Positions 10,931-62,625 of a stretch of 64,000 bases of DNA are shown piece after piece. Positions within the stretch are counted from its first letter, which is position 1. The number at the start of each line of letters is the position of its first letter. The stretch comes from Paragordius varius (lineage: Eukaryota > Animalia > Nematomorpha). Both the position numbers and the translations under genes were made by a program. Below the pieces are notes generated by a model. That model saw only the letters and a program-made list of their open reading frames with translations, was not told where the DNA came from and did not search any database. The stretch lies in the NCBI GenBank assembly GCA_964247055.1, contig OZ176050.1, forward strand, positions 7,440,001 to 7,504,000. The letters run 5' to 3'.

Positions 10931-14021
<3,091 letters not shown>

Positions 14022-21694: not shown

Positions 21695-24600
21695 TTAATT
21701 ATATAATGTTGGTGACATCAATGTATCATTGCAAGTTTCATCCATTTCACATTGCAAAATTTCGTTATACGGATGATCAGGTAAGGACATATTCAAATTG
21801 CTGTAATCCAAAAAAGAAAAATCTGTATTAGAAGTTTCGGCCTCTCTATTTAACATATTGTATTCAACCATATTGTTTTGCGCATCAATATTTTTTCTAC
21901 TATTATCTGTATTATTTACGTTGGTATATAAAGAGACTGGAAGGTTCAATACATGTTTACCAGCAATATTGGTGGCTGAGTAGTCATTTGAAAGGGGATA
22001 ATTGTGACCAAAAGTAGAGAATTTAAATTTATTGAAAGAATTATTATTATGATTAATATTATTAGACGTTGTTTCATGAAGCGAAGAATTTGTTTGGTTG
22101 GCTGAAAAATTAAGAGGTGGGTTTTGTAAGCATTTGTATCCATTTGTAATATCTTCACCGGTTTTGAGCAAATTGACTAAGACACTATTTGTGCCGAGTT
22201 TTGGGACATTTTTACCATTTAATAGCTTTGATGGTCCAACATTGGAATTTAAATCCCCTATAATTTTTTTTGGTTTTTATGTAATAAAGAATGAATATAA
22301 AAATAAAATGGTTAATATAAAAATAACAAAGGAGGAAAAAACAGGTATTCGAAAAACGCCATCAATCATTAAATTTTATTGCCACTTTCGTCTGCTTATT
22401 AATTAAGTACATCTAGTGTGATTTTTCCTTTCATTTTCAAATATCATTATTTATTTTCGAATGCATATATTTTGTACTATAATTTTTTGTGCTTACTGTA
22501 TAAAAACATTAATACAGCAATTTGCCTAATTGGGAAAATACATCTGACTAACGTTTGTAACTTTATAACTAAGACCTTATTTAGGTACATCGAATGATAT
22601 ACAGAATTTAATTGTTTAGGGGCTTTTAAAAGGTTAATTATTAAAAGCGATTATAAGGCAGTGGGGCTTGTGTATTTTAAGTTCAAAGAATTTGAAAGGT
22701 TTTTATCTTAGGAAGTGTTTATGAGTGGATTCCATATCCAATCAGTTTTTATCTTTCCTTGATATAGTTTTTCTATAACCTTAAAATCGGTTCCAAAAAA
22801 TGTTTAGTAAAAAATTTATAAAAGAAAAAACATTCTTCAATGTCTTTAATTCAAAATTATAATCGGTTTGTTTAAAACCATAGTATCGATAAATTATAAT
22901 AATTTTGTGTCTGCATTTTTTTTAAATGTTGGCGCTATAGTGACTAAGAAATACAAACTGTAAATAGATATGAATACGTTAAAGCTTACGTTTCCTTGCA
23001 CCAGAAGAAAATAAGGCATTATTTTCCAAAATATCATGTTTGTATAAATCAAATCGTTTGAATCGGTCTCCATTGTTTATAAGGTTGTTACCGTTTATTT
23101 TATCAATATTATCATTCAAAATCCTAAAAACAGGTACGCTACCATTTAAAACCGCTTGATAAGTATTTGTTGCATTCAAAGACGCGCCATTTAAATTTTT
23201 GTACCTAGAATATCATTTAGTATAGTGATATAGAGCTAAATTCTGTAAAATAAGTGATAGGTGATACCCTTGGTCACAGTACAACCCAACTATTTGGAAT
23301 GTCACTTTTTATTATTGGTTATATGAGTGTTTAAGATAAATTGAGAAAATAACAATGAGAGCAAATATATACCTTAATCCTTATTTCTTGCTTAAATTAT
23401 GGGAATTACGTACAATTAAGAAATAAAACATAAACTTGCTAAACAAATTTATTATCTTTATTTACCTGTTAAACCTTATAACCAACAATGTATCATTCAC
23501 TGTATATCTAACTTAAAAGATGAACTCCTTAATTTGTTAAGGTAATATAGAATTATATATGATTATAAAATTGAACAATTTAACACAAAAATATACTGAA
23601 TTGGAGTTCCCGTTCTAATAACTTGTTGCATAACATATAAAGGGGGAGGGGAAACACAATTTTTTCCTTGTTGTAGGCTTTGTGATGCAGTTGAAAGTAA
23701 CAAAGTTTTTTTAATGTCATCAACACACTTTGATTCATCTTTCGTCGGGCTGTAAAGCACAGTGTTAAAGGGCATGTTTTTATCATTTATCTTACCCTTA
23801 CAATCCTCCTGTAAACTCATTATATCCTCAATAATATTCTCCATACTATCCCGCCGTGCACCGTTAGAAAGTTGGGATTCTTGGTAACCACTGTCATCCT
23901 ATATATCAGAATAAAAAAAGTTTTTTCGCAAAGTTTAATATGATCTTGCGAATACATAGTGTATAAGTTAAAGTGAGGGTATATTATTCTTAATATATAG
24001 TCATTTGTTAAACTTCTGCAAAATAATGATTTTACAGATTAAAAAATCATTTGAAAATTAACTGCAATAATTTGTATGATATAAATAATCGAGTAGTCAT
24101 TATATAGTATAAACTTAAGAAAAATGTATATACTAAATCTTACATGTAAAGAAGATGATGAATCGATTGGGCTTATTAAATTGGTTGATCCATTAGAGGC
24201 TGTATATTAAAAAAATAATTAAAATTTTATATAAGAAGACTAAAATAACCTATTTATATATTATTTTATTTTTTTAAATTTATTCAAAATCACAAAACTT
24301 ACCAGTACCACGTTAAACAAAGATTTAGAAAAAGGGACAAATATAACTGTACAGAATACCTGAATCCATTAAATGATTTATTTTAGCTATATTCCTAGAA
24401 TTTTGTGCCAATACATCTTCAATGGATGATGGATATTCGGCGGCTTTCACCACACCATTGTTCACATTTATGGTTTTATAAGTTTTATAGGGATATTTCA
24501 TATAATTACCATTAGCAAGAGAGGCGGATAAATCATAATTTGCCATATCAGTCAATGCATAATTATTTTTATGTAAGTTGTTTGAATTGTAATAAATGGT

Positions 24601-27600
24601 GTCAGGCCTTTCCATTTTGGAATACAAGCCAACCGAAGGTACATTTATATCTTTAGCCAGGGAACTAGAAAACTTTTTATTTATTCTTTTGGCCGTATTA
24701 ATGTTATTCGTATTTGTGGTATTGATAGAAAATGAATCAATATTGTGCGAGGAATTTCGTTTAACACTTCGATTTATGGATGCTTTTTTAAGGCCATTAT
24801 GCGTTATATTTGCATGTGTACTCTTTTTACCAAACGTGGGAGCGTCCAACAAAAATATGTCATCTTTAGAAACGTATTTTATGTTCGCCTGTTGAATAAG
24901 ACTAGGTGCTCTATGGCAAAGTGTTTCATCAATCGATTTTTCTTCCTTATTCCTCCTTAGCGATGTGGTATTACCACAAAAGTTAGAATGATAAAAAGGA
25001 TTTTGTATTACAAGGGATGGATCAGATGGATTAACTTCAATAAGGTCGTTTGTATTTGGATTGGTAGTTACAACCAAATTTTGTCTCCAAAATTCTGGGT
25101 GAACTTGTACAATGTTTGATGGATGAACGGTATCAAGAGAATTATTAGCCTTAATAGTTTGACTATCATCTTTTTTCTTCTCCGATGGGATGGGACGAGG
25201 TGATGATTTTATATTCAAAAGATTCTTTGTGTTGAGCTTAATGGCTCGCCAAGATTTGACCGCAGATTCAGGCGTTTGGAAATCAGACAAAATATATTCA
25301 GGATTTTCGCGAAATCTGAATTAAAAGTTATGATAAAGACACCGAAATTTAGATAAATGCTATATTAAGAATAAACGCTTAAAGGGGAAACGATTGGCAG
25401 GTAAAAAGGGAACAAAACATATACTAACTCGCATAGATTAACCCAAATTAGTAAACTGTGTTTGATAAAATTTACAAAATAGTATTACGGAAATATCGCT
25501 AATATTATATAATTATTTATATAATAATCATCTCTATCATATTTCATTCACACAATCAAAATATTTTGTAAGTAAGCAACACTTGATAACTTAATAAATT
25601 TTGTCAAACTTTTTCATATTTTTGTGTGTGCCTACCAGCATTATTTTTCGATTGATTAAATACTTAAATTTTTCCCAAATATTTATATTTTTTCATATTT
25701 TCCCACTAAAAACAAACAAATGAATATCACTAAAAAAGAAATCAATAAATATTTTTTTGATTTGAAGAGAAATAAGTTATGTAAAAAAAGAAAACAAGAA
25801 ATAAAATTATAATTATAATATTTTTTTGACAAATCTATCTATCGTTAATATTGCATGTATGTAACGCATGTTTATATCATATTTTAGCAATATAAACATA
25901 TAACGCAGTTAGATAATAAAATTAAAAAAAATGTTTTTGTTGAATATTAAATGTCAAGGTCTGAGCTATACGCGTTAATATATAGGAAAAGGGTGTTTTA
26001 CTTCCAAAAATATAAATGTACGGTCAGGTTAGAATGAATAGGCGTTTTTTTGAAAAATAGGCCAAAAGAACTTTAATTATAATAAATAGCGATAAAATTT
26101 TAAAAAATGCTTACTGATAAAATGAAATCATATTAATTGCCTAAAACCATTTTAATAGGTTTAAAAAAAGATGTTATCTATTTTTAGACAGAATTTTAAT
26201 AACGTATAATTTAAGTAATATAAAAATAAATAAATATTTTGTTCAAGTTTAAAATCTAATCCTTCATAAACTTTAAATTTCCAAAATTTGATATATAGGC
26301 CAATTATAAAGGACGATATAAATATTCTTAAATGATATAGGCCAATTATAAAGGGCGATATAAATATTCTAAAAAATACTATTCCTACAAACACAAATAT
26401 TTCATAATTAGATTCGTAAAATAAATAAAAATAGGCATTAAATGACTGTACTAAGGTAAATACTCTTATAATTTAAGGATAGTTAGGATTCTTAAACTAT
26501 CAAATGCTCAATTATTTATCCTAAATTTTTAAAAAAATGTTCTTTAAACACAAACCTATTCAATGTATCGTATGATAAATATTTATAGACGTTTGACAAA
26601 AAAAATTGGTTTTTCATTTTGTAGTCAAAAATTTGTTAACTAAGATCAAAGAATCATTGATTACGATTTTAAAATAAAAGCTTTTATATTTATCCCTTCT
26701 GCGATTATTATTTTTATACCCATATAGATTTAAAACGGTTTCATTAGGTGCAAATAGATTTGTATTTGTTAAAAAACTTATCTGATTTGAGATGTTCGGA
26801 GAATATTTGTTATATTAAATCGATAAATATATTATCAAATATTTTATCGTGGATAAATTTGGTAAAATATTAAATTGATATTTTTACTGCTATTTAATAC
26901 AAATAAAGAAAAATTTACAATTCTATTTAAATAACTTGTAATAATTTTTAAAGCTCAAGTAAATTAAATTTTTATCATATCGATATTTAAATTGTTAAAA
27001 ATATGTTATATTAATATATTTTATCGCACATTAACATACTCCAAAAAAATGGTATTAATAATAAATTGAATTGACATATAGAATATTTAATATAATATTT
27101 TTAGAAATTTAGGTAAAAAATACGATATTTCAAAAAATCTTAATTACTATCCAAAATTTAACAATTAAAAAATATATAAGAAAAAATTATTTATTTGTAT
27201 AACTTAAAAACTTACCCCACAATATTATGCAGACACACTATGTAACAAGAAGGTGAAAAAGAGGATCGATAATGTTGAAGTTTACTATTAAGGTTATTTG
27301 ATTCAGGGTTGTTTATTTTACCATTCCGTGATATTTGGTGAATATAAGGCGATAGTTTAGCATTCATAAAATCATTATTATTATTATCGTTGTTTAATTT
27401 ATGGAAATGTTGTGAGCCATTTATATTGCTATAATCTGCAGTATTTAGTTTATAGGATGATGAAGTAGAAACATTAAAATTTTTGTTTAAAGAGACGTTA
27501 TGATAACCATTCTGATTATTAAATTTATTATTAGCCAAACCGTTTTTGCTGGTAACATCATTATTTGTTGGTAATTGCCCATTTTTCAAATCTCCATTCC

Positions 27601-30600
27601 ATTTGTTGTGATTAAATACAGTTTGAGATGGGCTTTGAGTCCCATTATATGTTGGTTTTGTTTGTGGGTTTAAATCAATTTTTTGTTGTATGAAAGTATC
27701 GTTGTTATTAACATTGGAAATTTCAGGTTTTTCAGTTAAAACTCCCCCTGAATCTATAGCGTTATCAACAACGCAAGCCTGGGTACTTACCCAAGCAAAC
27801 CCACCCTGTTTAACCAAAAGCCTATAAATGCCAGTTTTGATTTGTCCAAAAACATTCACTGTAAAAAATTAAATAAAAGATTATATATATAAGCGCGTTC
27901 AATAATTTTTTAATGTGTTAACAACATTGAGCAATACTTTTATCCATCCATTTTTTCGAAAATTGATAGGAATCAAAAATTTCAGCATAAATGTTAAAAT
28001 AACTGTAAAATTGTTGCTAATTATAAACAGACATGGCGTGATAATGAAAAAGAAAATTTTAGCCGTTACGTTTTTTAAATTAAATGAAAATGTTTGGATA
28101 TATAATAAAATTTTTATCTTATTCACGATAAGGCAATAATTTAAACCAAATTACTTAATTTTTCGTCAAATTAATAAGGTTGTACTTATATGTATCTATC
28201 AAATAATTATATATTATACATCGTTTCATATCAGATCTAAATCGTTCGAGATCAAGAATGTGAATCAAATCGTAGAATGAACGTCCAACCAGTTGCCAAA
28301 TATCGTATCCCAATACATCGGCAACTCTAAAGCGTGATAATTTATTTTATGATATTTGTATTAATATTTAAATAAGTACTTAAACGATATAACATTATTT
28401 AATCATTACAAAATATGTAGTTCCAATATATTACTTATTTATTACACTAAATTTAAAGTTTATAAGGTTTTTCAAATTCTTTAAAATGATATTAATTCGT
28501 AATTATCATTACAAAATTTATAGTTCCATATATTACTTATTACACTAAATTTGAAGTTTATAAGTTTTTTCAAAATCTCAAAAAGGTAGTATATTATACG
28601 GGTTATTTTTGCAAAAAAAGGTATATTAAATTAAATAAAATTCAACAAATACAACTTTAAATAAAATTTACCGTTCATCAAAATACATGATTTTCATATC
28701 AATGCGATGTTTACTCAAAAGTGTAGCAACGGGTTTTAAAAGCCGAGAATTTGCCTTAGACTGCAATTTGTATTGTTCGTTATGGACAATATTATTTTTG
28801 AAAATTGTAGGGGTTTTATGAACAATATTTTCATTGATTTGTGGATATGGTTTTATATCATTCAAATATTTGACGTTTACTAAATATAATAATTAAAGTT
28901 AACATATTATGGGGGTGATGAAAAAAATATAAATTACTAATATTTTAATTTTATATTTTTTAATAACGGGGGGGGGGGGGGTTTATAAGCTTGCACTTTA
29001 GATTTGTTTTTAACGGACAAAAAATACTGAGATTTTTTCGAAATTTGAGTTTTATTTTAAAGTAAGCGCCAAGATTTTTAAAATATTAGATAAGTTGGCT
29101 TTTAACAATATATCATGATAATTTTCATACATAATTATTTTGAAATGTAAAATAAATTTCCAAAATATTTCATTAATTTTAATCAATTATTTGTATAAAC
29201 AATATATGTATATGAACAATTATTTAAACTTCAACTATATGGTAAAATGTAAAGATAAATTTTTTTCCTTTAAAAATTAACACAAAAATAAAATTTCTAA
29301 AAAATAAACTTTGCAATTTTTCCATTTCATCTTTCAACACTGCATCCAACATTAGTGATGAGATTAAATTGCTATTCGGATTTAGGAGTTTAGATTTTAT
29401 GATAGCATTTTTAAAGTCAATATTACAAACTGGTGTCGCTATTAGCATAGTACAAATAAGTCGTTTGGGTTCAGGACTCAATATATCGTTTTTATTTTCC
29501 ACTTTCGTTTTATCAGTAATGAGATTAGATGTTAAATGGTTTTTAAAGTTTTTCGATGTTTGCTTATTGGGGTAGAAGTGAGAATGACCAAAAAAATGTA
29601 AGACCTACAGATATGTGACAAGTTATATATCAATTAAAAATAGAGAGGCTCGTAAAATAATGTCTAAATGAGAAGGCTTTTAATCATAAAAAAATCTTTA
29701 AAAATAAATCATAATCCAATAAATTAAGCGCCATTTTTCATTTAATTCCAAATATTTTGATATTTAGCACAACCTATACATTCTTTTATCGTGTTTTTTA
29801 AATAGCACCATTTTTAACAAAATTTGATATTATTATAAAAAAATTGGTAAATTTTATAGATACAATTTATTGCGTAATCTCTTAACCTTATACTGTTGAT
29901 GATTGAAAACGGATTTATTCAATCGGCACACCGGATGACTGAGAGTTATATGGAAAGGAGATTGAGTCATATTACTAGTAGGAGATTTCGATTCCATATT
30001 TGCATTGTTTTCGTTTTTAGAACTGCCATCATTTTTATAGCCTTGTAATGGGTCAGCTAAACTATCTGTTGTGTTCCCACTCTTGTCATTTATATCGTAA
30101 TTGGATATATTGGCGTTAGTCAAGTTTGAAGTGTTAGTATGGGGCACACAAATGCGATTATAAACGTATTTAAAACGAAGTATCGTATTTATCGTACATG
30201 TTAGTAGGGTATTGTGATCATCTCTTCTCCTATCATGATTAGTATATTCATCTTGCGAGTTTTTACTACTTTTTTCCAATAAACCATCATTTTTTATGTC
30301 TCCCCTGTTAGTAATAGTTGCGTTTATGTCCTTAACTTTAATACCATCGCTTGAATTTATTAACAAATCATTCGTGTTATTTTTGTCCAAAACCTCTGAC
30401 TCTTTTTTGAGTTTAGCAAGAAAATCTTCCACATCATCAGGATGAATGAATTCTGTTATACTTTGGCCCAGCAAACAAATCTAAAAAAATTCGAATATGA
30501 GCCATAATTAATTAATAATAGAGAGCAAGTATCATAATTTTTTATCTAATAAATAATTAATTAGATGCTGCTAATAATAATTATCAATTGACTATAAGGA

Positions 30601-47680: not shown

Positions 47681-50019
47681 ATGCATCATTTCAAGATTAT
47701 TATAAATGAAAATCATGACAATATCCGTCGATTATCTCTAGACGAACTGTCATACAATGCACTTAAACGTAAACTTGAGACTACATATCCAAATTTATAT
47801 ATTTCCAAAATATGCTACAAAGGTTAAATATAATTTTATTGTTAGATGATGAGCAGGATTTAATTTCCATTTTAAGTGATGACGATTTGCAGATAGCATT
47901 TGATATTTCAAATACAAATGCTCTAAAATTATTTTTAGAAACTAGAGACAATGTTAAAAGTGAAGCTGAGAAAAAATTGTTTCACCCTAGGATTATTTGT
48001 GATGGATGCGATTCACCAATATATGGTGTAAGATACAAATGTTCGAATTGCAATGATTTTGACTTATGTTCTGATTGTGAATCTAAGTCAGATATTCACC
48101 AAACTGATCATATATTTTTAAAAATAAAGAAACCTCTTGTACCTGGAACAATATTTCGTCAAATCCAAGTAAATACATATATTAAATTTAAGCCGAAGAA
48201 TACACAGTTTAGTGATAAGGAGCCGGTTAACAATCGCTACAATCAGTGAGCTTTTTATAATAATTTTATAGAAATTATGGGGGTCTTAATTTTGGAACCA
48301 ATTATTCATCTGCAAATACTTTTGATTCCTTGAATTTTGGACCGGGAGGATTTTGGTTTTCCTTTTTGAGAAATATTGGTCAAAGCTTTTCCACCCTTTT
48401 TGATCCTTTGGGTATATTTAATGATTTTATAATGGTAAATGAAGGATTGATTATGTTTTGTAATAACGTTCTTAAATCCCTAATATGATGATAAACGAAA
48501 ATTAAATAGAAATTAAATTGAAAAATATATTTATAAACTGAAATTATAAATAATATGTGAAATTGTTTGGTCAATAGTAATTGTAGACTAGTTTTGTGCT
48601 TGTTAGCACTCATCAGTACGCCCATATATGCTTTACGTTATTTAAGGACAATTATATAATTAAGCAGTGGCGAGGTATTTTTACCCCTCTTTGTCATTTT
48701 TTTATATACATTGTTACACAACTCCAAGCTAATTTATGTTTTGACACTATTTTTTATTTTATTATTTATTTGATGTGTTCAAAATAGGAGGATTTGATTA
48801 TGGTACAGGTGTATATTCTCCAAGCCATCACAATAATCAAACTGTTGATCAACCTATCCATAACCCTTTTTCATATACACCATCTCCTGGAACTAATGTT
48901 ACAAATGGTTATCACAATTGTTCGCAAAGTAACACAACAAATAGCAATAAAAGTTACAATGGAATAAAATGTAGTACTTTGGAATCTTTTGTTAGCATGC
49001 CGCTTACAACATCTATCTCTCCTATGATTACAACATGTTCAACAAAAATGACAAAAAGTGTTGGCAATAGCTGTGATTTAAATGGCCATATCTCCACGTC
49101 AGAAGAGGCAACCATACTAGATAATATAGTTGTTCCTGGTAAGACAGTTTTGACAAACACCACAACCACTTCTCTCATACTTCCCAAGGATGAGATTGAT
49201 TTTGATTTAAAAAATCTTGAAAATAATATACAAGAGAATTCGGAATACATGGACATTAAATCAGCTAGCCTTACTTCTCCGTCAAGCGTGTCTGAAATTG
49301 AAAATGATGAAGAAAGCACGACGAATGAAAAAGTATTGTCCTTTTCTGATAGCGGATCTGATTTCGAAAATAGCATAGAAATTCTGGTAAGTGACCCCTT
49401 GGAGGAATCAAAGAAAAGGGTTGTTGAAGATCTGGTAGATTTACCGTCTGAATGGCTTGTCGTACAAGATGAAGACATTTTAGAGGGTACTTTTTATAGA
49501 TTTGTTTCTTAATATTCTTTGTCGTTCCTGTTTCCAATTTGTGACGAATAGAGTTTTTTAGCTCATAATGTATACTTGGTATCTTTTTGCTGAGGTATTT
49601 ATGACTAAAATTTAACATTAATTTATCTGTTTAATTCTGTTTCCACAAATATTCATAGAGACGATTACATATCAAAATAGTTATTATTAATTACATTTAT
49701 TTATTATAAAATATCAGAGAAAGACAAGGACGATACAAAATCTGATTTGGTAGAGTTTGTTGTTGCCAGTATTTTTCCCCCTATTCAAGAAATTAAGAGT
49801 ATAAATAAAGGTAAATCGATTACAAAAGATGGACACGAAAGCATAGATTTTGATAATAATAAGGATTTTGAAACACCTGAACAAAAAGTCAAGTTAAATG
49901 AAGCGCTTGATCGATTACAGAAAATGGGATACGTTAATGAGGGAGAATGGTTAACCATTTTATTGCGTATGAAACAGTATGATGTGGCAAAAGTGTTGGA
50001 CATTATACATCCATATTAA
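47681..50019 (+). CDS. SQSTM1: Sequestosome-1 / p62 (Ref(2)P-like) selective autophagy receptor, ~552 aa, 6 exons
   Basis: Exons 47681-47822, 47846-48168, 48193-48245, 48272-48411, 48788-49486, 49718-50019. PB1: FKIII...NIRRLSL...CYKDDEQDLISILSDDDL. ZZ: HPRIICDGCDSPIYGVRYKCSNCNDFDLCSDCE...H...H. Conserved FLRNIGQSFSTLFDPLG. LIR-like SEWLVV. UBA: LNEALDRLQKMGYVNEGEWLTILLRMKQYDVAKVLDII. Confidence 0.95.
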
Positions 50020-51103: not shown

Positions 51104-54100
51104 TTAATCCCAACCAGAACCGCTTGATTGATGATTGTTTGTGGCAGTTAAAGCCAGAGATTGTGATTCCTCAATAAAATTATTAATCAAATCATTATTA
51201 TTGTTGTTTTGATTAGTCACATCTTGTATTGCAGATGTAATTGTAAGAGGTTTACAATCGCTAAAATTGCCATTGTTGAATGAAGTTTCAATATTGCCAC
51301 AAATTTTATTATCAATATTTATATTCCAAACAGTTTCACCGGGGACTATTGAGGTTTCATTTATGCTATTTAAAAATAAAAGATTACAAAAGTTAATTAA
51401 TATTAAATTGACTATATATTAAAAATGTATGCAAATAAACATTGGGTAGAATCATAATTCCTCTTATAATATTAAAAATTTATCATAACTTTCAAATTCC
51501 CCACTTTTTAATAGTATAAGGTAAGAACAAAGTCATAGGAGCCCTTAAAATATTTTTGCATAATCTAAAATATAATTAATGATTTTAAATGCCTTCTATA
51601 ATTTCAAATTAAAACCATTTATAGGCTAAATGTTATAAATTTAATTTTCAAAAACCGAGCCAAATCTAATGGTAACTAGTTTAATAACCTTTAAAATTTT
51701 ATTGAACGCCAGACACGCAATAATGTTCACATATAAACCATTATAAATGCTAAAAAATACTAATGGATATTATTGATTTTAACATATAAATCAAAATTTA
51801 TAATATATGAAATATAACAAAAAACTTAATAAAAAAAAAGTACGCGTTTGAGGTTGAAGGAATAGATTCTAAAAATTTAACATATGAATCCTCTTCTGGG
51901 GATAGGGCTTGATTCTAAAACAATAAATTAGATGATTTTATTATCATTATTTCGCTATTTACGGTAAAATTTAAAGTTATGCAAAAACAATATTTTTTAA
52001 TAAACTTGATTTTTTATACCTATGATTGCCATCGTGATATAAAATGATATTACCAGATTACATACCTATTCCATATTTCATACACGAAAAAGATTATTAA
52101 AAAATAAAACTATCATTTCAATTTTTGTTTTTATAATTTTATAAAAAGAAACTATATATTAAAGATTATACAATCATCTAATGTGTTTCCAAAATTCAAA
52201 AAAAGTCTACCTTCTTTTTCCTACTATCATAATCAGGATATAACAAGTTTAAATCACCAGTGGTCCAAGTATTAAATTCATGAATTTCCATCAATGCTTT
52301 AGAGAGGGGCGAAACAGCATCTATAATTGATTTTGATGGCTCTTCCTAATTTTAGAAAAATATTCATATTGGTTATATACCATTTGCACTTCAAAAGTGC
52401 CCTTGAACACTTCAAGTTGGTCCTTTGACTATTTTGTTTTGTTTTTAGTTTTTATCAATCAAATCGTATATCCATCTATTTTATTGTTTTTAACCTATTT
52501 TTTATTTAATATAAATTTTAAAATCAATATCAACTTTTAATCATTGAGATATCATATATCTTTATTAATTTCTTAAAATTATTTTGGATATTTATAAGAT
52601 TTTAACACCTAAACAAAAATTATATAAGTTTGGGTTATTATTTACAATTTTTCATCGAAAACAATTGGAAATTAGTTTGATAGGTTAAAAAATAATAAAA
52701 TAAAAAAATACATGCAAAATTTATGGTTAAATTAAAATCTAAAAATTTGAAGGATCAACTTAAAGTGTTCAAGGACCAATTTGAAATGTTAAAGGATTAA
52801 CTTGAAGTGTGATACTCTAGCAGTGCAAATGGTATATCTTGAGTCTAATTAATTATTCAATCGTGATTGTAACTGAAACCAGCTTTTTGGCATCAATTAA
52901 CAGTGTGTATATTGAAATAATAAAAACTCTAATACAATTTTTTGTAATTCCAATATATTTTTTAGTTTTGCTTAACTGAATCAATGCATAAATCAGCCGT
53001 CGGGCCAGTTACAATTCCTCCCATTAGATGTAGTATGCATAATGATAAAAAACGGCAACTAATTCTTAAAAAATTAAAAAACTTTTTTGAAGGTATTTAT
53101 TGTTTGGGGTAACAATAATTGCTAATCTGGTAAAAAGAATTTGACAATCGTAAAAAATACTTAAATATATTATTTCAATGGCTGTTATTATATTTATCTA
53201 AATAAATTTATCACATACGTTAACATATTGAAGTTTTTGAAAATGATTAGGTATAAATTTGATTTATACAAATGTGTATAGGGATAAGTTGAAAAATTGT
53301 GCGGACAAAATTTTCATTATACCAAAACTCATTATGGATTAGGTAATTTAAAAAATATAAAGCCATATAAAAGACAAATTAAGTATGTGTAATAGTTTGA
53401 GATAATTAAGTATAAATGTCATAGTAACTGAGATATGTTATTATTAGAAAGGTTGTGGACTAGCACTATTTTATAAACCAAAATTCAAAAACATAGCATA
53501 AATTTCGGTTTATTAAACAATATCTGAAGTTTATCAGCAAACGTAATTTATATTACCTTTGATTCCAAATTTAAATTCTCCAAAGTCCAAGTCGTATCAA
53601 TTAAAGGATCCGAATTCGGGATTTCATTTACTGTTGCGACAGGTTTATTCTCTTCCTACATGCCAAATTTTTTATAAAGACATATTCATTCATATAAAAT
53701 AAATGTAAGTATAATTATTTTATATGACAATACGAACATAGAAATTTAAAATAATACTTCTTTTGGCATTGCGTTATTATCTCCCCAACCCCCAGCATTT
53801 TCATCAACCTATAGAAAAAATTTATTAAAAAAAATATTAATCTATATGCACCTATATATTTTCAAGCTTAAATTCAAGCTAATACCAAGAAAATTATCAT
53901 TTTTAAATAATAAACAAGTCTCAATCTGTTTTATGTAAAAAGGTTAAAAGGGCTTTAAAAATAAGAATAAAATCATATGTATATACTGGTGGCTTCCATT
54001 CATCAATAATTTGGTATTCGGTTTTCTATATGATAAGAAAATTGAATTATTTATAAATACTTAAAAACGGTAAATTAGTTATATAGTCAATTTTTTTTGA

Positions 54101-57100
54101 AAAGGGAATACCAAGTAATACCTCTTCAATTGTGACTGAATAATTAGTAAATGGATTTAAATTGGTTGAAGTTATGCTTTTATCTTCATTGCCAAAATTA
54201 TCAACCCCATTCTGACCTATTAATTTGTCAGCGCCATTTGCGTCACCATTATTTGCCCACCCATTTGTCTAAAAAATTGATTAATATTCAGTATAATAAT
54301 ATTTTTAAACTATATAAGGCTAATATATTTTTTAAGTCATTATATTCAAAATTATGATTTTTATCTAAAAATTAATATTCATTAAGTATAAAACATTATG
54401 AATTAAATTTTACGAATTCGAAATTTTTAGTAAATGGTGACATATTTTGATACATTTTTTTGCGTGTTTTCCATTTCAAAAGCAATTGAAACACAAAATA
54501 TAAGACTTAATGATCATTTATTTAATAAAATTAATAATCTATACTATTTAAATAATGCGTTTTATTCTTATTTATAATAAAAACTTATTTTTTACAAAAA
54601 ACGAAAATCATTCAAGATTCAACCGACCAACCTCTTTTATTGTTTCAACTTCAGAGGTTTTGCTGTTATTATCTGAAGAGAAAGCACCCCAACCGCCTTC
54701 ACTTTTTTCCTCAACGATATTGTTTTTATCGGAACCTCCCCATGCAGATCCGGTATCGTTGCCACCCCAACCACCACCACTTGTACTAACCTGAATATAT
54801 GCATTAATATAAAATGTGTGATTTAATTAATACGCTTTTCTTTTACATATATACCATTTACAGTTCAAATTCACCCTTAAACAATTCAAATTCATCCTTG
54901 AAAAATTCATATTCACCCTCGAACAATTCAAATTCACCCTTGAACAATTAGATTTCACCCTCAAAAAATTCAAATTCATCCTGAAATAAATTATGTGTTT
55001 TTGGAAATTAAAAATTATCTATATTTAATTATATTTATAAAAATGAAATCTTGTCTAAAATTAATATAACACTAAAAAAATAATAAACTATGCCATACGA
55101 ATATATTTTAAATTAATGATGAGTTATATTAGCCGGAAAAACTTTTATTTTTAGGGTGAATTTAAATTGTTCAAGGGTAGTTTTGAATTGTAAATGGTAT
55201 AGTTGTAATATGTTCAACGATATCTCTCCGAATCAAGTGTTTAAAATATAATTGATAAAAAATAAAAAATTTTTTTTACTTAATTATGTTTAATGAAAAA
55301 TTACGTAAGAGTTGTTTTTTATAGTATATCGCCAAGGCAGATTTTGTTTTTAATTGCAGTTAAAAGCTAAAGGACCATTGTTTATAATATATTCGTAAAC
55401 ATCTCAAAAATGTCAAATAAATTTAATATATTTTATGATATACTAAAAATAAATGAACAAAAAACATTTTCTATAACGTTTCTAGATTATCAAATTATCT
55501 TAAACGTAACGAAAATGTTATAAAAATTCCAAAAAATCTAATATATTTGATATTATACTTAAAGTAAATCAAAAAACATCTTTTACATTTTTTATTATTA
55601 TTATTATCATATAGAACCAGTGTTTATTGCTAAAATTATAATGGACATATCAAAATGTCAAATATCCAATAACTTTTTCGGTAATTTAATATAAAATCAA
55701 CCAAAACAAATAGATTGGAATTAATTTAAAAAGGTTTCATAAAATCCATCTTATTCGCCAACGTATAAAAATTCAAATTACCGAAAATATTATAAATAAG
55801 TGGCTAACAATTTTGGTTGTTAAATAATGTTAATCAACAGCATATGTAATACACCGGGAAAAAAGGAGAAAAAATCATGACAATCTTCACACATCCTTAA
55901 ACATATAATTATGTTTAATTATTTAAATCAGGGCTTCTTAAACTTTTGTAATTCCCGACCCCATTTATGATTGCGAGTTTCTTAACGCCCCAACAAATAT
56001 CAAAGAAAAATAAATTAATATTTTTTGATGATATATTTATTGGGTAACAATATACATATGAATATCAAAATATATAAATTTAGAATTCGTTTTGAAACCA
56101 GAACATTTTATGATGCATTTAACTATGATTTTTGCCATTTTTCTTTATAACAATAATTTTACAAGTTAAAAAACATTTTTTTATCACTCGCGATAGTTTA
56201 AGAAGCCCTGATTTATATCAATTTAATATAAAATTAAACTAAATACTTCATCCGTTTTAGTCGCCGTGTTCGTGACAGATTTATTAGTAGTATCATTAGT
56301 TGAAAACGATTCTTTGTCTTTATTATTATTACTAGTCCAACTAGTTGAATCACATTTAGTATCACCACCGGATGCCCCCCAACCAGATTCATTATGCATA
56401 GAATTATTCGTATTAGACGCGTTGCCCCAACCCCCTGAGGAGAAATCATTGGATTCATTATTCGTGTTACCAGTAGCCAAGTTTTTTTTATTATCGTTGT
56501 TACCACTAAATTGTGTTGGGGCGCCTCCATCACCCCAACCCCCAAAACTATTTCCACCATTATTCGAAGAGGATTCAGGATTAAACATTTGTGAAGATGA
56601 TGAACTGTTGTATATGTATATGTTTATATATATACCATTTACAGCTAAAATTTATCCTTGAACAATTCAAATTCACCCTCGAACAATTCAAATTTACCCT
56701 TGAACAATTAATTTACAAGCAATTCAAATTCACCCTGGAACAATTCAAATTCACCCTTGAACAATTCAAATTCACCCTAAAATAAATTATGTATTTTTTA
56801 AGATTAAAAATTGCCTTTTTTATATTTTTAAAAATAAAATTACGTTTAAAATTAATATAATAATAAACTATGCCATAAGAATATCTTTTACATTAATGAT
56901 GAGTTATATTAGCCTAAAAACAATTGATTTATATTTAGCGTGAATTTGAATTGTTCAAGCGTGAATTTGTGTAAATGGTATATATAAAATACGGTATGCA
57001 CATTAATGTTGGTCTATTAATAATACGGTGGTGTGTAATAAAAATCTATCTTTTTGTGTCCATAATTTATTAAATGTTGTAAGATAGTAAAACAATGTTG

Positions 57101-60100
57101 AATTTGAAACATTTGTTATTTTTTGCCCATACGCTATACTGTATTGCCAATTGACCAAAAATAATGTAAATTGGCTAACATATATGCTCATCCTGTAAAT
57201 GAAATATTATCAACATAACATAAAAATCCTTTCAGCTAAAACCATCAGGAACCGGATTTTAGTTACGGTTCTATAAGATTTTCGTTTTGCCATTGTGTTT
57301 TTCAGTCAAATGGTTCTAATTTTGGTGTTCATTTAAAGAATCACCATTATTTTATACACAAGAGGATAAAATGTGACAAAACATAAGTATATCAAACTAT
57401 GAAAATTCGTTTTTTTCTTAAATGGAAAAATTTTATTATAGAGGTTTTGGTTTTTTTCTTTTAGTTCTGAAACGGTAAAAATTTTACAAAAATGTTACGG
57501 TTCCAATAACTAAAAAATATGTCAAACCTGGGGGTATTTTAAGAGTGTTTTTTAATGTGCTCAACTATATATGCATGATCGTGAAAACATTGTTAAGAAA
57601 AATTAAGAAAAATCACTAATATACCAACCAATAGTAAATGTGAAACAGAATAAATTACTAAGATAATCATGTTGTTCAAAAGTATGGCAATGGCACTTCT
57701 TGCGGCCAATTTAATCGATGAATTTTGCAAAAAATATGATAATATTTTAAGATTAACATGAATAAATATATAAAAAGGAAAAACAACACATTAACCTAAT
57801 ATAGTTATAGGAATAAATTTGTATTTAATGAATGCTTTGATCGTTTGTGCAAAGCGCCGGACTCTATCACTGTCAGCCATGGGCAAGCAAGTGTTAAAAC
57901 TTCCAAAAATTCATCTTAATACAATTCAAGTTATTACCCTAATACAAAATGATTTAAACAATTTTCCAAAATTCGTTTAATTTTTTTCCTAAAAAAGCAA
58001 ACGATATACTTATCATTATCCCGAGATCCAAAAGCACCGCCATATGAAGGGGAGGCATTGTTGTAAGATCCGCGCCCACGACCACGGCCTCGACCTCTGC
58101 CTCCTCCTCCTCGACCTCGGCCTCGAAATGAAGAACCATCAAATTTGTCGCTTGATTCCCATTCTCGCTGACCTAATTAATAAATATTGCACCGTAGTAA
58201 AAAACAGTATATTTTTGACTACAAAATGAAAAAAAGATCAAATATAAAATAGATAAAAAACAGCCATGTGTTAGATGCGACTTTTAACTAAAATTATATA
58301 TAAGAAAGTAAAAACAGTAGATTTCACAGAGAAAATGATTATTATTATGCCGTAAACATGCATTTGTTAGTGTCATAATATGACTTTTAATTAATGATTA
58401 GAAAAAAATTAATGGGAAAAACATTAAAATTAAGTAAGTAATTTTATTATTTTCCTCTGTTCATAAGCCTTTCTAGTATGCCATATTTATCTCTTGTCTT
58501 ATCACTTTTTCGTTTTAAATTGATTATTTAAATAACCATAATTTTATTGATATTATCATTTTTTGTATTTACAAATGGGCGCAAAATTATGCAATTACAT
58601 GGTGTACGTTTTCCAAAAATTAAATGTTTATCTTTAAGATTTAATAAAATAAAAAATGCAATATATACTAAAAAAATTTTTAATTTGATTCATTGTTAGG
58701 TCGAATAAAGATAGATACAAAAGAAAAGCTGTAAACTAAGTTTTATTTGTTAATATGTGTCAAAGATAATCATAAACGCAAAATATCAAAAGTTACTTAA
58801 AACCCTTAGTAAATTAATGCTAAAAAATGGCACTTTGGCAGTTTAAATCACAAAAACATGGGATTATGATGTAAAACATTTGAATTTTTATTTTAACTAT
58901 CAATGATTCCTCAAAATTTTATAATAAAGTATGGTTGCCTATAATGGCAATATCTTATAACTAGACATTTATGTAAAAATCGGAAAAATTGCATAATGTT
59001 CATTAATTATTACACACAATTCATTATTTAAAAAAAACATAGAATATGTATGCACATATACCACCGCCAAAATCGCGTCCATTCTGTTCATTAGATCTAT
59101 CCTTCCATTCAGATCGATAACCACCGCTAAAACCATTATTATTGTTTTCACCATCAAACGAACTTTTATAATTATTGTTCCATTTTGAATCTGATGAATC
59201 ATTCCGGTTATTTCTACCATTAGTATTAGTAAAAGCACCGCGACTACCTCCACCACGTCCAGCACCCCTAGAAGCACGATAAACTGGGAAAGCCATATTA
59301 TCCCCCTCATGATCATCATTATCATTATAAGAATTTGATTCAAAATTTCTCTCATTATAAGATGATTTATTTCGACCGCGTCCAAAATCATTTTCAGTAG
59401 AGGAAGAAAAGTAATCCCTATTACTACTTTTACCATATTGATTATTTTGATGGTCGACAATGTCGGCAGGTACACCGTATAAGGGATCGGGATAATCAAA
59501 TGATTCATCTTTCCGACCAATAGAATTGCTATTATAATTTTTACGAGCAGGTGTCTAGTAGATATGAATATAAAAAAGCAATAAATTTAGGGTCATCAAC
59601 GTTTAACACTCATGTATTGAATTGTTGGTTATAATTGAGATACAAAATTAACATACTTTAAAGGGGGTGTAAAACACGCGACCTCCGAGATATTATGTGC
59701 GGCCTGCAAAAAATTTGGAAAACTAAATATCAAAATTTGAAATATATAATTACAAAATCTTATGAATAGCTTTTTCCCGATGGTACCGGACTAACAATCG
59801 GCTAAATAAATATTTATTTTTGCCATTTTCACAGACTTATGTTTTTGTCTAATGAATTATTTTATAATTTCCCTGTATTTTTAGAATGCGGCCTACAAAG
59901 CTATTTGTGTTGGACACCCCCGCTTAAGACATATGGATGCCAGTAAATATTTAAAGGAGCTTTATAAGGGAGGAAAATATTTAAGGATCCCCTGCAAGAA
60001 ATTACTTCATCATCATCATTGACAAAATATCCATTGAAAAGCGGTTTCTTTGGTTTTTGTTGAACCTTAATAATTGTATAGTAACATTAATTTTTAAAAC

Positions 60101-62625
60101 AAAGGCTTATAGGTAAAAAAAATTTGACATAAAGATATCTTAAATAACCTATCGTTCATATATAATAAATATTTGCACTAAAAGAGTAAATATTTTAGAT
60201 GTAGGTTAAAGTTGGGACATTGATATGTTGACCACTAGCTAAACTTAGATAAGATAGACAAATTATAATGTATGTATATTAAATTATTTTATTGACTATA
60301 CATATATATATATATATTATATATAATTAAAGGTTTTTAGGTAATTTTAGTTTTAAAAAACCATTTCTACTTTATTCTCATCAACTGGGGCCATAATGGG
60401 AAGCGGGTTCTGAGCCATATCCAACATTTTGTAGGCATTTAATCCAAACTGCTTTGAATATTGTGCCAATCTATTTGCAAATAAAAATTTTATTCGTAAA
60501 GGGCATATATATATGATAAACAAAAAATCAAGGTATATTATGAAAGTTATGATTGGTGAATCGCATAAACTGTGACTGTAGGCGCTTAATAAACCAGTTA
60601 AATATATATTTATCATCAATGGATTAAATTATGATTAAATAATGACATAAAACAACTTAAATTAGATAGAAAAAAATTCTGTAATTTGTCATATTTTCAT
60701 TACTATTTATACTTTTTGATTGTTTGATGTAGTTACAACATATATTTTCATTTGTGGTAATGATAGCCGATTATCATAAATATATACAGTAGCGTATGTC
60801 ATAATACAATGCTACTCCATACAAAAATAACATTTTTTATAAAAAAAGGAGATACTATTAATATGTGTGTATACAACTAGGGTTATTTTATAAAAACATT
60901 TTTTTAATTCTTTTATGGACTAACATTGTTTTATACCATATGTAACTGTAAATTATAAACGGTCAAGTCTGATTTTAATTCAATAAAAAGACGGACTAGG
61001 TCATAAAAATTTAAAAAAATGATCATTAATAAATCGTATAAATTAACATCTGCTGTAATAAAAGAGTAGTGAAAAAATATACCTTTCAAAGATTACACAT
61101 ATATCCGCTCAAATAAAAAATACAAAAGCGGTATTTTAATATTCTTTTAAGTAATCATTTTATAAAATTTAATTTACATTGTATTAGTGGTGATATATCA
61201 ATCAATAATGCAAAATATGCAGTGTGTGATCAAAGTGATTAACATAAAATGGAAAATACCTCAAAAGAAAAAGTAACATGTCGATTATCTGACATAAGTA
61301 TAAAACAGAATTATTAGTGTGTCAAAAGGGAAATGTAAAAGCAATACATTTGTTATACATCAAAGAATACCGTAAAAATTAAATTAAATTGGTATGGTAA
61401 ATTTTTTCCTATTACAGTAGCGTATGACCTAAAACATTATTAGTCCATAAAAGAAAAAAAAACTTTTTTTTAAAAAAACAAGGCTATGGGTTTATACACA
61501 TATCCATAATATCCCCTTGTTCTTTTATAAAAAAACATTTTATTCTTTAGAGATTAATGTTTTATACCATACACTACTGTAGTATTCAAATGCCAATATT
61601 TATTTTGAATTTTACCCGTACAGAAATATAATTATGTTTTAGAAAAAAAATAAAACAAATTTCTAAAGTATTTGTAAAAAGCAATAAAGAGACATACTCT
61701 GGACGATTATTGACACAAAATTTTTTGTGTCTGGCCCAATCTGAATAACAGCATGGTTCCGAACAATAAATGGCTTGACTGCAACAACCGGCAGTAAACA
61801 TGGCTAAAATATATTTTATTAAATTAAAGCTTGAATTTTTGGCTTTTTAAAAAAATAAGATGGAACGGGTATTTAGTATATAATTACCTGGTTTACTGCA
61901 ATTAAAACAAAGATTGACATTCAAATTAGGAGGACATGCTTGTGGTACCATTGTCGGCAAAGATATATTCTTTATTATATATAGAAAAATAATGAATACT
62001 CTTTCAAAAGTAATATTTTGTTCTTCCGGATTAAAAGGCCCATTCCGATAAATGTTCAAATTTTGATTTGCTGCATGAGATGAATCTTGATCTAAAAATT
62101 ATACCCATTACGATAAACTTGAATAGTATATAACTTTTGTGTTTGTTTGAGATCTATTAAATTAAAAAGGCAAATACCTCATCATGGCTAGTGAGTTGTT
62201 GAAATTATCTTTGTTTTCAACAGATCTGCTTTGGCTTAAAAACGTATTGGCAATCTGAACCTTTAATTTTGGGTAAGGTTTCTTAAATTTACAAATTTGA
62301 TTATGAAAATTTTTTATGGCTTCAGAACATTCTTCATTGGTGCTAAAAGTAATCAAACTAAATTTTAAATTATTAAATACGCAGTAGATTTATCATTTTT
62401 GTCAGTCTTATGTATTCTTTTAATATTTCCAACATTTTCAAATATTTCTCTTATATCATCCTATAATTTTAAATAAGTAAAACTTCCGTCCAAGCTAAAG
62501 GTATCAGGTCCACAAATATAGTGGCACTTAATATAAATTAAAATTGTTTACTCATTTCGATGATAATTTTTAGATGGTAAAAAGGATTTGCTTTGGACGT
62601 ATGCTTCACACTCGCCTTGGAACAT
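51104..62625 (-). CDS. RRM + MYND zinc finger + RGG + GW/WG-repeat protein (~945 aa, 21 exons); candidate small-RNA/germ-granule factor
   Basis: Exons 62625-62552, 62526-62484, 62460-62381, 62357-62178, 62153-62119, 62091-62000, 61969-61888, 61803-61698, 60470-60362, 60065-60006, 59554-59062, 58172-58010, 56604-56247, 54790-54632, 54268-54122, 54025-53987, 53808-53758, 53655-53557, 52345-52211, 51914-51844, 51365-51104 join in frame (2838 nt). RRM: ATIFVDLIPLAWTEDDIREIFENVG...KSTALITFSTNEECSEAIKNFH...LKVQIA. MYND: CFNCSKPAMFTAGCCSQAIYCSEPCCYSDWARHKKFC. RG tracts: SRGAGRGGGSRG and FRGRGRGGGGRGRGRGRGRG. About 9 GW/WG motifs; ends SGWD*. The start codon and the single-gene join are inferred. Confidence 0.75.
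52380..52832. mobile_element. TA-flanked MITE (CCATTTGCACT TIR) in an intron
   Basis: TATA-CCATTTGCACT ... AGTGCAAATGG-TATA with CCTTGAACACTTCAAG-like subterminal repeats. Confidence 0.75.
54854..55197. mobile_element. TA-flanked MITE (CCATTTACA TIR) carrying 21-bp tandem repeats
   Basis: TATA-CCATTTACA ... TGTAAATGG-TATA with about 6 units of AACAATTCAAATTCACCCTTG. A sister copy is at 56635-56978 and a decayed copy at ~45620-45880. Confidence 0.8.
55929..56210. mobile_element. hAT (Charlie-like) MITE with near-perfect 8-bp TSD
   Basis: Perfect 16-bp TIR CAGGGCTTCTTAAACT / AGTTTAAGAAGCCCTG; flanks ATTTAAAT and ATTTATAT (7/8). Confidence 0.85.
56635..56978. mobile_element. TA-flanked MITE (CCATTTACA TIR), second copy
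   Basis: Same TIR and 21-bp tandem units as 54854-55197; source of the spurious LEQFKFT ORF. Confidence 0.8.
60787..60948. mobile_element. Tc1/mariner-like MITE (TA-CAGTAGCGTATG)
   Basis: TA flanks; termini CAGTAGCGTATG / CATATGTAACTG. Opposite-orientation sister of 61415-61579. Confidence 0.65.
61415..61579. mobile_element. Tc1/mariner-like MITE (TA-CAGTAGCGTATG)
   Basis: TA TSD (61413-61414, 61580-61581); TIR CAGTAGCGTATG / CATACACTACTG (1 mismatch). Confidence 0.75.

Follow-up and report, generated by a model that had tools for sequence, protein, structure and literature searches.

A spliced Paragordius varius gene model with a probable RRM-MYND head and an RG/GW-rich tail, a candidate ligand of Argonaute-family proteins

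Does a run of suggestive peptides on one strand of an AT-rich genome amount to a single protein, and if it does, what might that protein bind? We asked this of a locus in a 64,000-nucleotide (nt) stretch of the genome of the nematomorph Paragordius varius (GenBank assembly GCA_964247055.1, contig OZ176050.1, positions 7,440,001 to 7,504,000; hereafter the window, in whose own numbering all positions are given). The minus strand of this locus carries an RRM-like sequence, a MYND zinc finger, arginine-glycine (RG) tracts and a series of glycine-flanked tryptophans (GW motifs), all of which a preliminary description of the sequence had placed in one continuous frame. No such frame is present: the quoted peptides lie in separate stop-bounded pieces, distributed over all three frames and with 23-1456 nt of non-coding AT-rich DNA between them, and they are linked only by a spliced model of about 20 exons (Table 1). 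Built with GT-AG introns, the model contains no internal stops and its phases agree at every junction, giving 922 amino acids (aa) with the optional exon E8b and 880 aa without it. The first seven introns measure 25, 23, 23, 24, 27, 30 and 84 nt, and the remaining twelve 1227, 816, 889, 1405, 1456, 363, 96, 178, 102, 1211, 296 and 478 nt. An in-frame stop stands 5′ of E1 at 62706-62704. From E9 onward every open piece has a donor of the GTA or GTT type close to its end, which pairs with an AG just before the next piece, and the phases agree at 10/10 junctions; the donor of E12 (GTTGGT) is weaker, and if it were unused the protein would stop 7 codons further on. The GC content of the window is 23-31% throughout and 26% overall, nearer to the 29.1% of Henneguya salminicola (PMC13644364) than to the 36.7% of Dicyema japonicum (PMC6736024). 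Myxobolid myxozoans and Dicyema are the only animals from which introns as short as the first ones here are known, and in both the donor signal is reduced to 'GTa' (PMC13644364). The donors of the present gene are of the GTA type, and tiny introns on the scale of three further genes are absent here. Reassigned stop codons, as in a sequence of ciliate-type origin, were considered for the tiny introns and set aside, the long exons being free of TAA and TAG and a neighbouring p62-like gene being of animal type.

To judge whether the joined pieces are coding we turned to the reads X1, X3, X4 and X5, which are genomic contigs colinear with the introns and inform on polymorphism and copy number, not on splicing or expression. 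Read depth over E4-E11 is at the single-copy baseline, and several intronic stretches are high-copy repeats. Nine of the 16 haplotype variants listed in E9-E11 are synonymous in the frame of the model, versus 2 and 0 in the other frames; against an expected synonymous fraction of 0.22 this gives P=0.003, for a small sample (n=16) that took only the best-supported differences. By exon, the listed variants comprise 2 synonymous and 3 non-synonymous changes in E9, and 5/7 are synonymous in E10. Divergence differs between exons and introns as well. It amounts to 5-8% with many gaps in introns and to ~2% in exons, about half of the divergence of the introns and with far fewer indels; over 669 nt at E9, for example, the X4 contig, from a second haplotype or strain, has 16 differences and 1 gap (~2.4%), compared with 25 and 17 in 469 nt of intron. 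We conclude that the locus is a real, single-copy, spliced, minus-strand protein-coding gene in the AT-rich genome of a parasitic animal with ultrashort introns.

Over 56380-62379 the X1 reads resolve into two haplotypes, each at about half depth, and X4 and X5, which come from another sample under the same species label, carry alternative alleles throughout the same interval. An open reading frame (ORF) of 205 codons rich in I, L, V and M, at 58972-59586 on the minus strand and in frame +1 relative to E9, was examined as a competing product and rejected as a composition shadow, since the other frames make only 0-2/16 variants synonymous. Its lack of stops reflects the many AAT, GAT and GGT codons of the real frame.

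The head of the predicted protein begins with an RRM-like stretch. Splicing out the GT-AG introns of 25, 23 and 23 nt turns three unconnected pieces into RRM-consensus sequence over every junction, reading ...ATIFVDLIPLAWTE / DDIREIFENVGNIKRIHKTDKNDKST / (A)LITFSTNEECSEAIKNFHNQ...KLKVQIA with the slashes at the joins. Within it the ribonucleoprotein motif RNP2 is IFVDLI, which retains its aromatic residue, and RNP1 is KSTALITF, in which the aromatic residues at positions 3 and 5 are replaced by T and L. The spacing of these motifs and the 'TEDDIREIF' helix agree, as read from the sequence, with the RRM consensus, in which the elements follow a beta-alpha-beta-beta-alpha-beta order. The RRM was scored one exon at a time, and its three exons, of 14, 26 and ~40 aa, are each too short for a firm score; the best match to Pfam RRM_1 (PF00076), on the E3 piece, reached 12.7 bits (E=0.12; gathering cut-off 20.7 bits). 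As a lead only, the ten nearest named neighbours of E4 by ESM-Atlas language-model features were all RRM_1 clusters, at 0.89. The consensus pattern, the weak Pfam score and the language-model neighbours together make an RRM at aa 26-105 probable; it is a divergent one, which presumably folds as other RRMs do. The N-terminal RRM of the preliminary description is retained as a probable, consensus-like domain, although no exon reaches the Pfam threshold. Introns of 20-30 nt can hide whole domains: the probable RRM, cut up in this manner, was invisible to searches at the level of ORFs or exons.

The second element of the head is firmer. E8 alone matches Pfam zf-MYND (PF01753) over profile positions 14-39 with 22.7 bits (E=1.1e-4), a score equal to the gathering cut-off of 22.7, in accordance with the MYND finger described earlier. 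The signature reads CFNC...AGCC...YC...C...H...C, its first CxxC (CFNC) coming from E7 and its second half from E8. The best match to E8 in the PDB was the MYND finger of SMYD2 (E=0.02), and those of ETO, DEAF1 and ZMYND8 were also among the best. At the level of sequence, the MYND finger is confirmed. The exact form of the linker from E4 to this finger is uncertain because the longest of 969 stop-free paths was taken.

The remainder of the protein is of a different nature. By the charge-hydropathy criterion the tail (aa 265-922) classes as disordered, and its disordered GW region carries a net charge of -21. Its first third holds the RG or glycine/arginine-rich (GAR) tracts, at aa 322, aa 360 and aa 445-465, the last having nine RG in 21 aa of E10; the joined model contains 25 RG/GR dipeptides in total. 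One variant within the E10 tract is a 3-nt insertion at 58099. The middle third holds eight glycine-flanked tryptophans in an acidic context of G, S, N and D, and the last third has further tryptophans flanked by S or T and ends in GWD. Nine of the 19 tryptophans of the protein adjoin a glycine (aa 506, 542, 558, 610, 619, 636, 659, 725 and 921), and they are 9-66 residues apart, except for the last. Composition does not account for this arrangement. In the tail 9/17 tryptophans touch a glycine against a mean of 3.8 after shuffling, a count matched in 104/20,000 shuffles, and the six GWG compare with 0.13-0.24 expected, a number that 0/20,000 shuffles reach; the six other N-rich ORFs of the window contain no GW or WG at all. 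The clustering of GW motifs is non-random and goes beyond composition, and the cluster shares its composition and spacing with known Argonaute hooks. Both tail features had been listed before: the RG/RGG tracts proved real and non-random, and the approximately nine GW/WG motifs are, one for one, the nine glycine-touching tryptophans on the minus strand between 62625 and 51104. The terminal W-D, said to recall Vasa, does stand at the end of the protein as GWD, but the likeness to the invariant C-terminal tryptophan of Vasa (PMC10378496) extends over two residues only.

Table 1. Exons of the gene model on the minus strand of the window, with the parts of the predicted protein that they encode
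Feature	Coordinates (strand)	Description
Whole gene	51104..62625 (-)	20 GT-AG exons, coding sequence 2769 nt, 922 aa; ATG 62625-62623, TAA 51106-51104
E1	62552..62625 (-)	N-terminal 24 aa; donor GA/GTAAAC (slash, exon end), then 25-nt intron
E2-E4	62526-62484, 62460-62381, 62357-62178 (-)	Probable RRM, aa 26-105; exons split by two 23-nt introns
E5-E6	62153-62119, 62091-62000 (-)	Linker; introns of 24 and 27 nt
E7-E8	61969-61888, 61803-61698 (-)	MYND zinc finger, aa 189-226; 84-nt intron between
E8b	60371..60470 (-)	Optional 33-aa exon, 100 nt, LAQYSKQFGLNAYKMLDMAQNPLPIMAPVDENK; joins phase-2 donor of E8 to phase-0 acceptor of E9
E9	59062..59554 (-)	164 aa, disordered, N/S/G/D-rich; GRGRNK and RGAGRGGGSRG tracts
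E10	58010..58172 (-)	53 aa; GAR tract aa 445-465
E11	56247..56604 (-)	119 aa, first GW exon: FGGWGD, SGGWGN, SGWGA; also STSWTS
E12	54632..54790 (-)	53 aa: GGGWGG, SAWGG, EGGWGA
E13-E15	54268-54122, 54025-53987, 53808-53758 (-)	All phase 0: NGWA, DEWK, AGGWGD
E16-E19	53655-53557, 52345-52211, 51914-51844, 51365-51104 (-)	Acidic C-terminal part: TTWTL, NTWTT, TVWNI; ends SGSGWD, then stop

What could such a protein do? The reading that we put forward, with somewhat less than even confidence, is that the locus encodes one protein of about 900 aa that acts as an adaptor of the ligand type for members of the Argonaute family and possibly for Tudor proteins. A folded head, composed of the divergent RRM and a MYND protein-interaction finger, would be followed by a disordered tail of ~650 aa. 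The head may anchor the protein to RNA or to a partner protein. The RG tracts might be substrates of arginine methylation that bind RNA or Tudor readers and promote condensates, and the GW tryptophans could insert into the tryptophan pockets of the PIWI domains of Argonaute-family proteins. Through these contacts the protein would bridge a small-RNA-loaded Argonaute or Piwi to a ribonucleoprotein (RNP) granule or an effector, much like GW182. Genes of the pathway are on record for Myxobolus, which expresses AGO, Dicer and Piwi-like genes (PMC10454682). Binding of Argonaute by the GW region is, as a claim by itself, a candidate that we hold tentatively, and a role in the germline or in transposon silencing is pure inference on our part.

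Several observations weigh against this adaptor reading. In the gene structure, introns of 23-84 nt give way abruptly to introns of 96-1456 nt once the MYND exon is passed; the link from E8 to E9 is ambiguous, having two in-phase solutions of which one runs through a single exon out of 52 candidates; and sequencing runs guessed to be RNA contain next to none of the sampled words of the locus. In the head, the RRM stays below the family threshold exon by exon, the exact E3 and E4 having no Pfam RRM match; E4 has no RRM match in the PDB, where searches with E3 and E4 gave nothing meaningful. Of the eight zinc ligands of the MYND finger seven are canonical and one is displaced: Ala occupies the position of the third Cys, and the residue just before the fourth ligand is a Cys (AGCC versus CGRC in SMYD2). 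As to the tail, predictions from GW/WG motifs have a record of false positives among RGG proteins and low-complexity proteins rich in G and S (PMC2910046), and no relatives were found in which the tryptophan positions could be compared.

The points on gene structure bear on a first alternative, in which two adjacent genes lie on the same strand: a compact RRM-MYND gene with tiny introns that ends soon after 61698, and a separate orphan gene for a disordered RG/GW protein that starts in E8b or at the ATG at 59296, the fusion being an artefact. The switch in intron size is sharp at precisely this boundary, and short introns tend to have short neighbours (PMC13644364). The two parts are separated by a 2.2-kb gap with high-copy repeats, no listed sequencing run is on record as RNA, and E8b, which contains in-frame ATGs, is one of 52 phase-compatible candidate exons (the most protein-like one, and the one with the highest GC among the longer candidates, 0.40). 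On the other hand, E8 ends in a strong GTATGT donor of phase 2, and read-through or use of the nearest acceptor would add nothing but hydrophobic junk. From this donor, E9 can be reached in phase by two independent routes, one straight to an AG at 59528 (880 aa) and one via E8b to a strong phase-0 acceptor at 59554. The frame of E9 is open for 86 codons 5′ of its first ATG and both variants listed in that part are synonymous; E9 therefore needs an upstream coding exon. Judged from the splice phases alone, the RRM-MYND head and the RG/GW tail probably belong to one transcript, and we regard a pair of genes as rather unlikely.

If a single protein is accepted, its tail may still have no particular business with small-RNA pathways. 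Under this second alternative the product is a general RNA-binding protein of RNP granules or condensates, whose W, F and R residues serve as stickers in phase separation and RNA binding and which has no specific tie to Argonaute, Piwi or Tudor proteins. RGG tracts plus a tail rich in G, S and N and bearing aromatic residues are a common make-up of granule proteins, and the searches yielded no relatives for a comparison of tryptophan positions. RGG/GAR RNA-binding proteins include the FET family, nucleolin and the Sm-tail type. Like them, the present protein has RG/RGG tracts within disordered sequence together with a zinc finger and a probable RRM; unlike them, it has a finger of the MYND and not the RanBP2 type, lacks a SYGQ domain and carries an acidic GW cluster. 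A genome-wide screen for GW proteins flagged RGG RNA-binding and glycine-rich proteins, Arabidopsis RGGA among the candidates, and considered G/S-rich repeats such as those of hornerin, with eight GW motifs, probable false positives (PMC2910046). In contrast, the strict GWG context (6/17 tail tryptophans) and the enrichment of tryptophan in an otherwise non-aromatic acidic tract exceed what composition would give here, and the other N-rich proteins of the window are without GW. A general granule protein appears to us a doubtful explanation.

The proposed adaptor function is modelled on GW182 (TNRC6, Gawky). Fission-yeast Tas3 and ciliate Nowa1/2 are functional GW182 analogues. Plant NRPE1 and SPT5L are as well (PMC2910046). 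With GW182 the present protein shares a long disordered region in which multiple tryptophans are flanked by G, S, N or D, as in the established Argonaute hook; a probable RRM whose RNP residues are non-canonical; and further S/T-flanked tryptophans toward the C-terminus. There are differences too. GW182 runs from an N-terminal GW domain through UBA, Q-rich and PAM2 regions to a C-terminal RRM. Here the order is reversed, with the RRM-like stretch near the N-terminus, and UBA, Q-rich and PAM2 regions were not detected. GW182, in turn, has neither a MYND finger nor GAR tracts, and no sequence similarity was found. Pfam likewise found neither UBA nor any other GW182-family domain in any exon. E16-E19 matched no Pfam family, and E19 had no usable match in the ESM-Atlas. 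E4, compared exhaustively by phmmer with 1.84 billion representatives, matched three spurious tandem-repeat proteins only, with no self match and no orthologue. Word-indexed homologue searches with E9 and E11 found nothing, a weak negative since they covered only proteins of similar length and full-length relatives were excluded.

The arrangement of the head brings in a third explanation, that the gene descends from a PIWI-interacting RNA (piRNA) factor of the Vreteno/TDRD1 type which shed its Tudor domains in a lineage whose Tudor repertoire had shrunk, and gained low-complexity sequence later. Vreteno of Drosophila and Bombyx has an N-terminal RRM followed by a MYND finger (PMC10711660, PMC12526068), and TDRD1 has a MYND finger too. 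The order found here, an RRM-like stretch at aa 26-105 and, after a linker of ~80 aa, the MYND finger at aa 189-226, matches the Vreteno layout, as the preliminary description had noticed, and sets of Tudor genes are strongly reduced in extreme parasites, among them Dicyemida and Myxozoa (PMC12147562). The match in layout is not accompanied by evidence of sequence kinship with Vreteno or TDRD1, the MYND half being closest to SMYD2, ETO and DEAF1 and half of the RRM having no relative among the 1.84 billion representatives. The two or three extended Tudor domains that define Vreteno, and the four Tudor domains of TDRD1, have no counterpart in this protein, which has RG and GW low-complexity sequence instead. 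The earlier statement that Tudor and helicase domains are missing holds for every exon of at least 20 aa and for ten intronic ORF pieces searched with Pfam, and the introns leave scant room for a hidden domain of 180 aa. The descriptions of Vreteno cited here, moreover, are confined to insects (PMC10711660, PMC12526068). Since Tudor domains are absent and no sequence kinship was shown, the resemblance to Vreteno is one of layout and not of membership, and descent from such a factor seems improbable to us.

By its motifs, the protein resembles something that Tudor and Argonaute proteins would bind, and not a Tudor reader itself. A bolder version of the adaptor reading, to which we give very little credence, is that, in a parasite lineage whose set of Tudor proteins had shrunk, a Vreteno-type RRM-MYND head became the basis of an independently evolved GW182-like adaptor for Argonaute/Piwi. 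Methyl-arginine ligands for Tudor proteins and tryptophan hooks for Argonaute would then be united in one polypeptide, as a ligand-only scaffold replacing the reader-type scaffolds of germ granules. Should binding to Argonaute or Piwi be true, the GW hook would have been invented independently once more, on a hitherto undescribed domain scaffold and in an animal group whose small-RNA machinery is almost unstudied, and the locus would offer a way into the silencing effectors of these parasites. If there is no such binding, it is one more lineage-specific low-complexity RNA-binding protein.

Some further features of the window were recorded. Three copies of one element resembling a miniature inverted-repeat transposable element (MITE), ~350-420 nt long, lie at 56624-56969, 54843-55208 and 52380-52795. 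Their terminal inverted repeats are built of 21-nt subrepeats of the AATTCAAATTCACCCTTGAAC type and end in TATATACCATTTACAG. All three share one orientation, each stands 20-52 nt upstream of an acceptor (those of E11, E12 and E17), and read depth at the copies is ~10,000x the single-copy baseline. The intron between E8 and E9 contains an inverted pair at 60886-60951 and 61412-61477, which is 79% complementary and has a depth of ~150x the baseline, and a repeat stretch at 59780-59979 with a depth of ~20x. Rfam and tRNA scans over the whole window found nothing. A 140-aa ORF at 12033-12455 (+) has a tail resembling the C-terminus of reverse-transcriptase ORFs of the long interspersed nuclear element (LINE) type, and we take it to be probably a retrotransposon remnant. 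The convergent neighbour at 47812-50019 (+), mentioned above as p62-like, resembles p62/sequestosome-1 by eye: it has a ZZ-type finger (CDGC...CSNC...CSDC), a UBA-like end in its last exon and a long N/S/T-rich exon between the two. A word-indexed homologue search with its first exon, covering only proteins of similar length, found nothing. Farther away, at 21695-30474 (-), several long N/S/T-rich exons occur, one of which starts PAS-like by eye (…SITEFIHPDDVEDFLAKL…), and this suggests a bHLH-PAS-type gene with very long low-complexity inserts.

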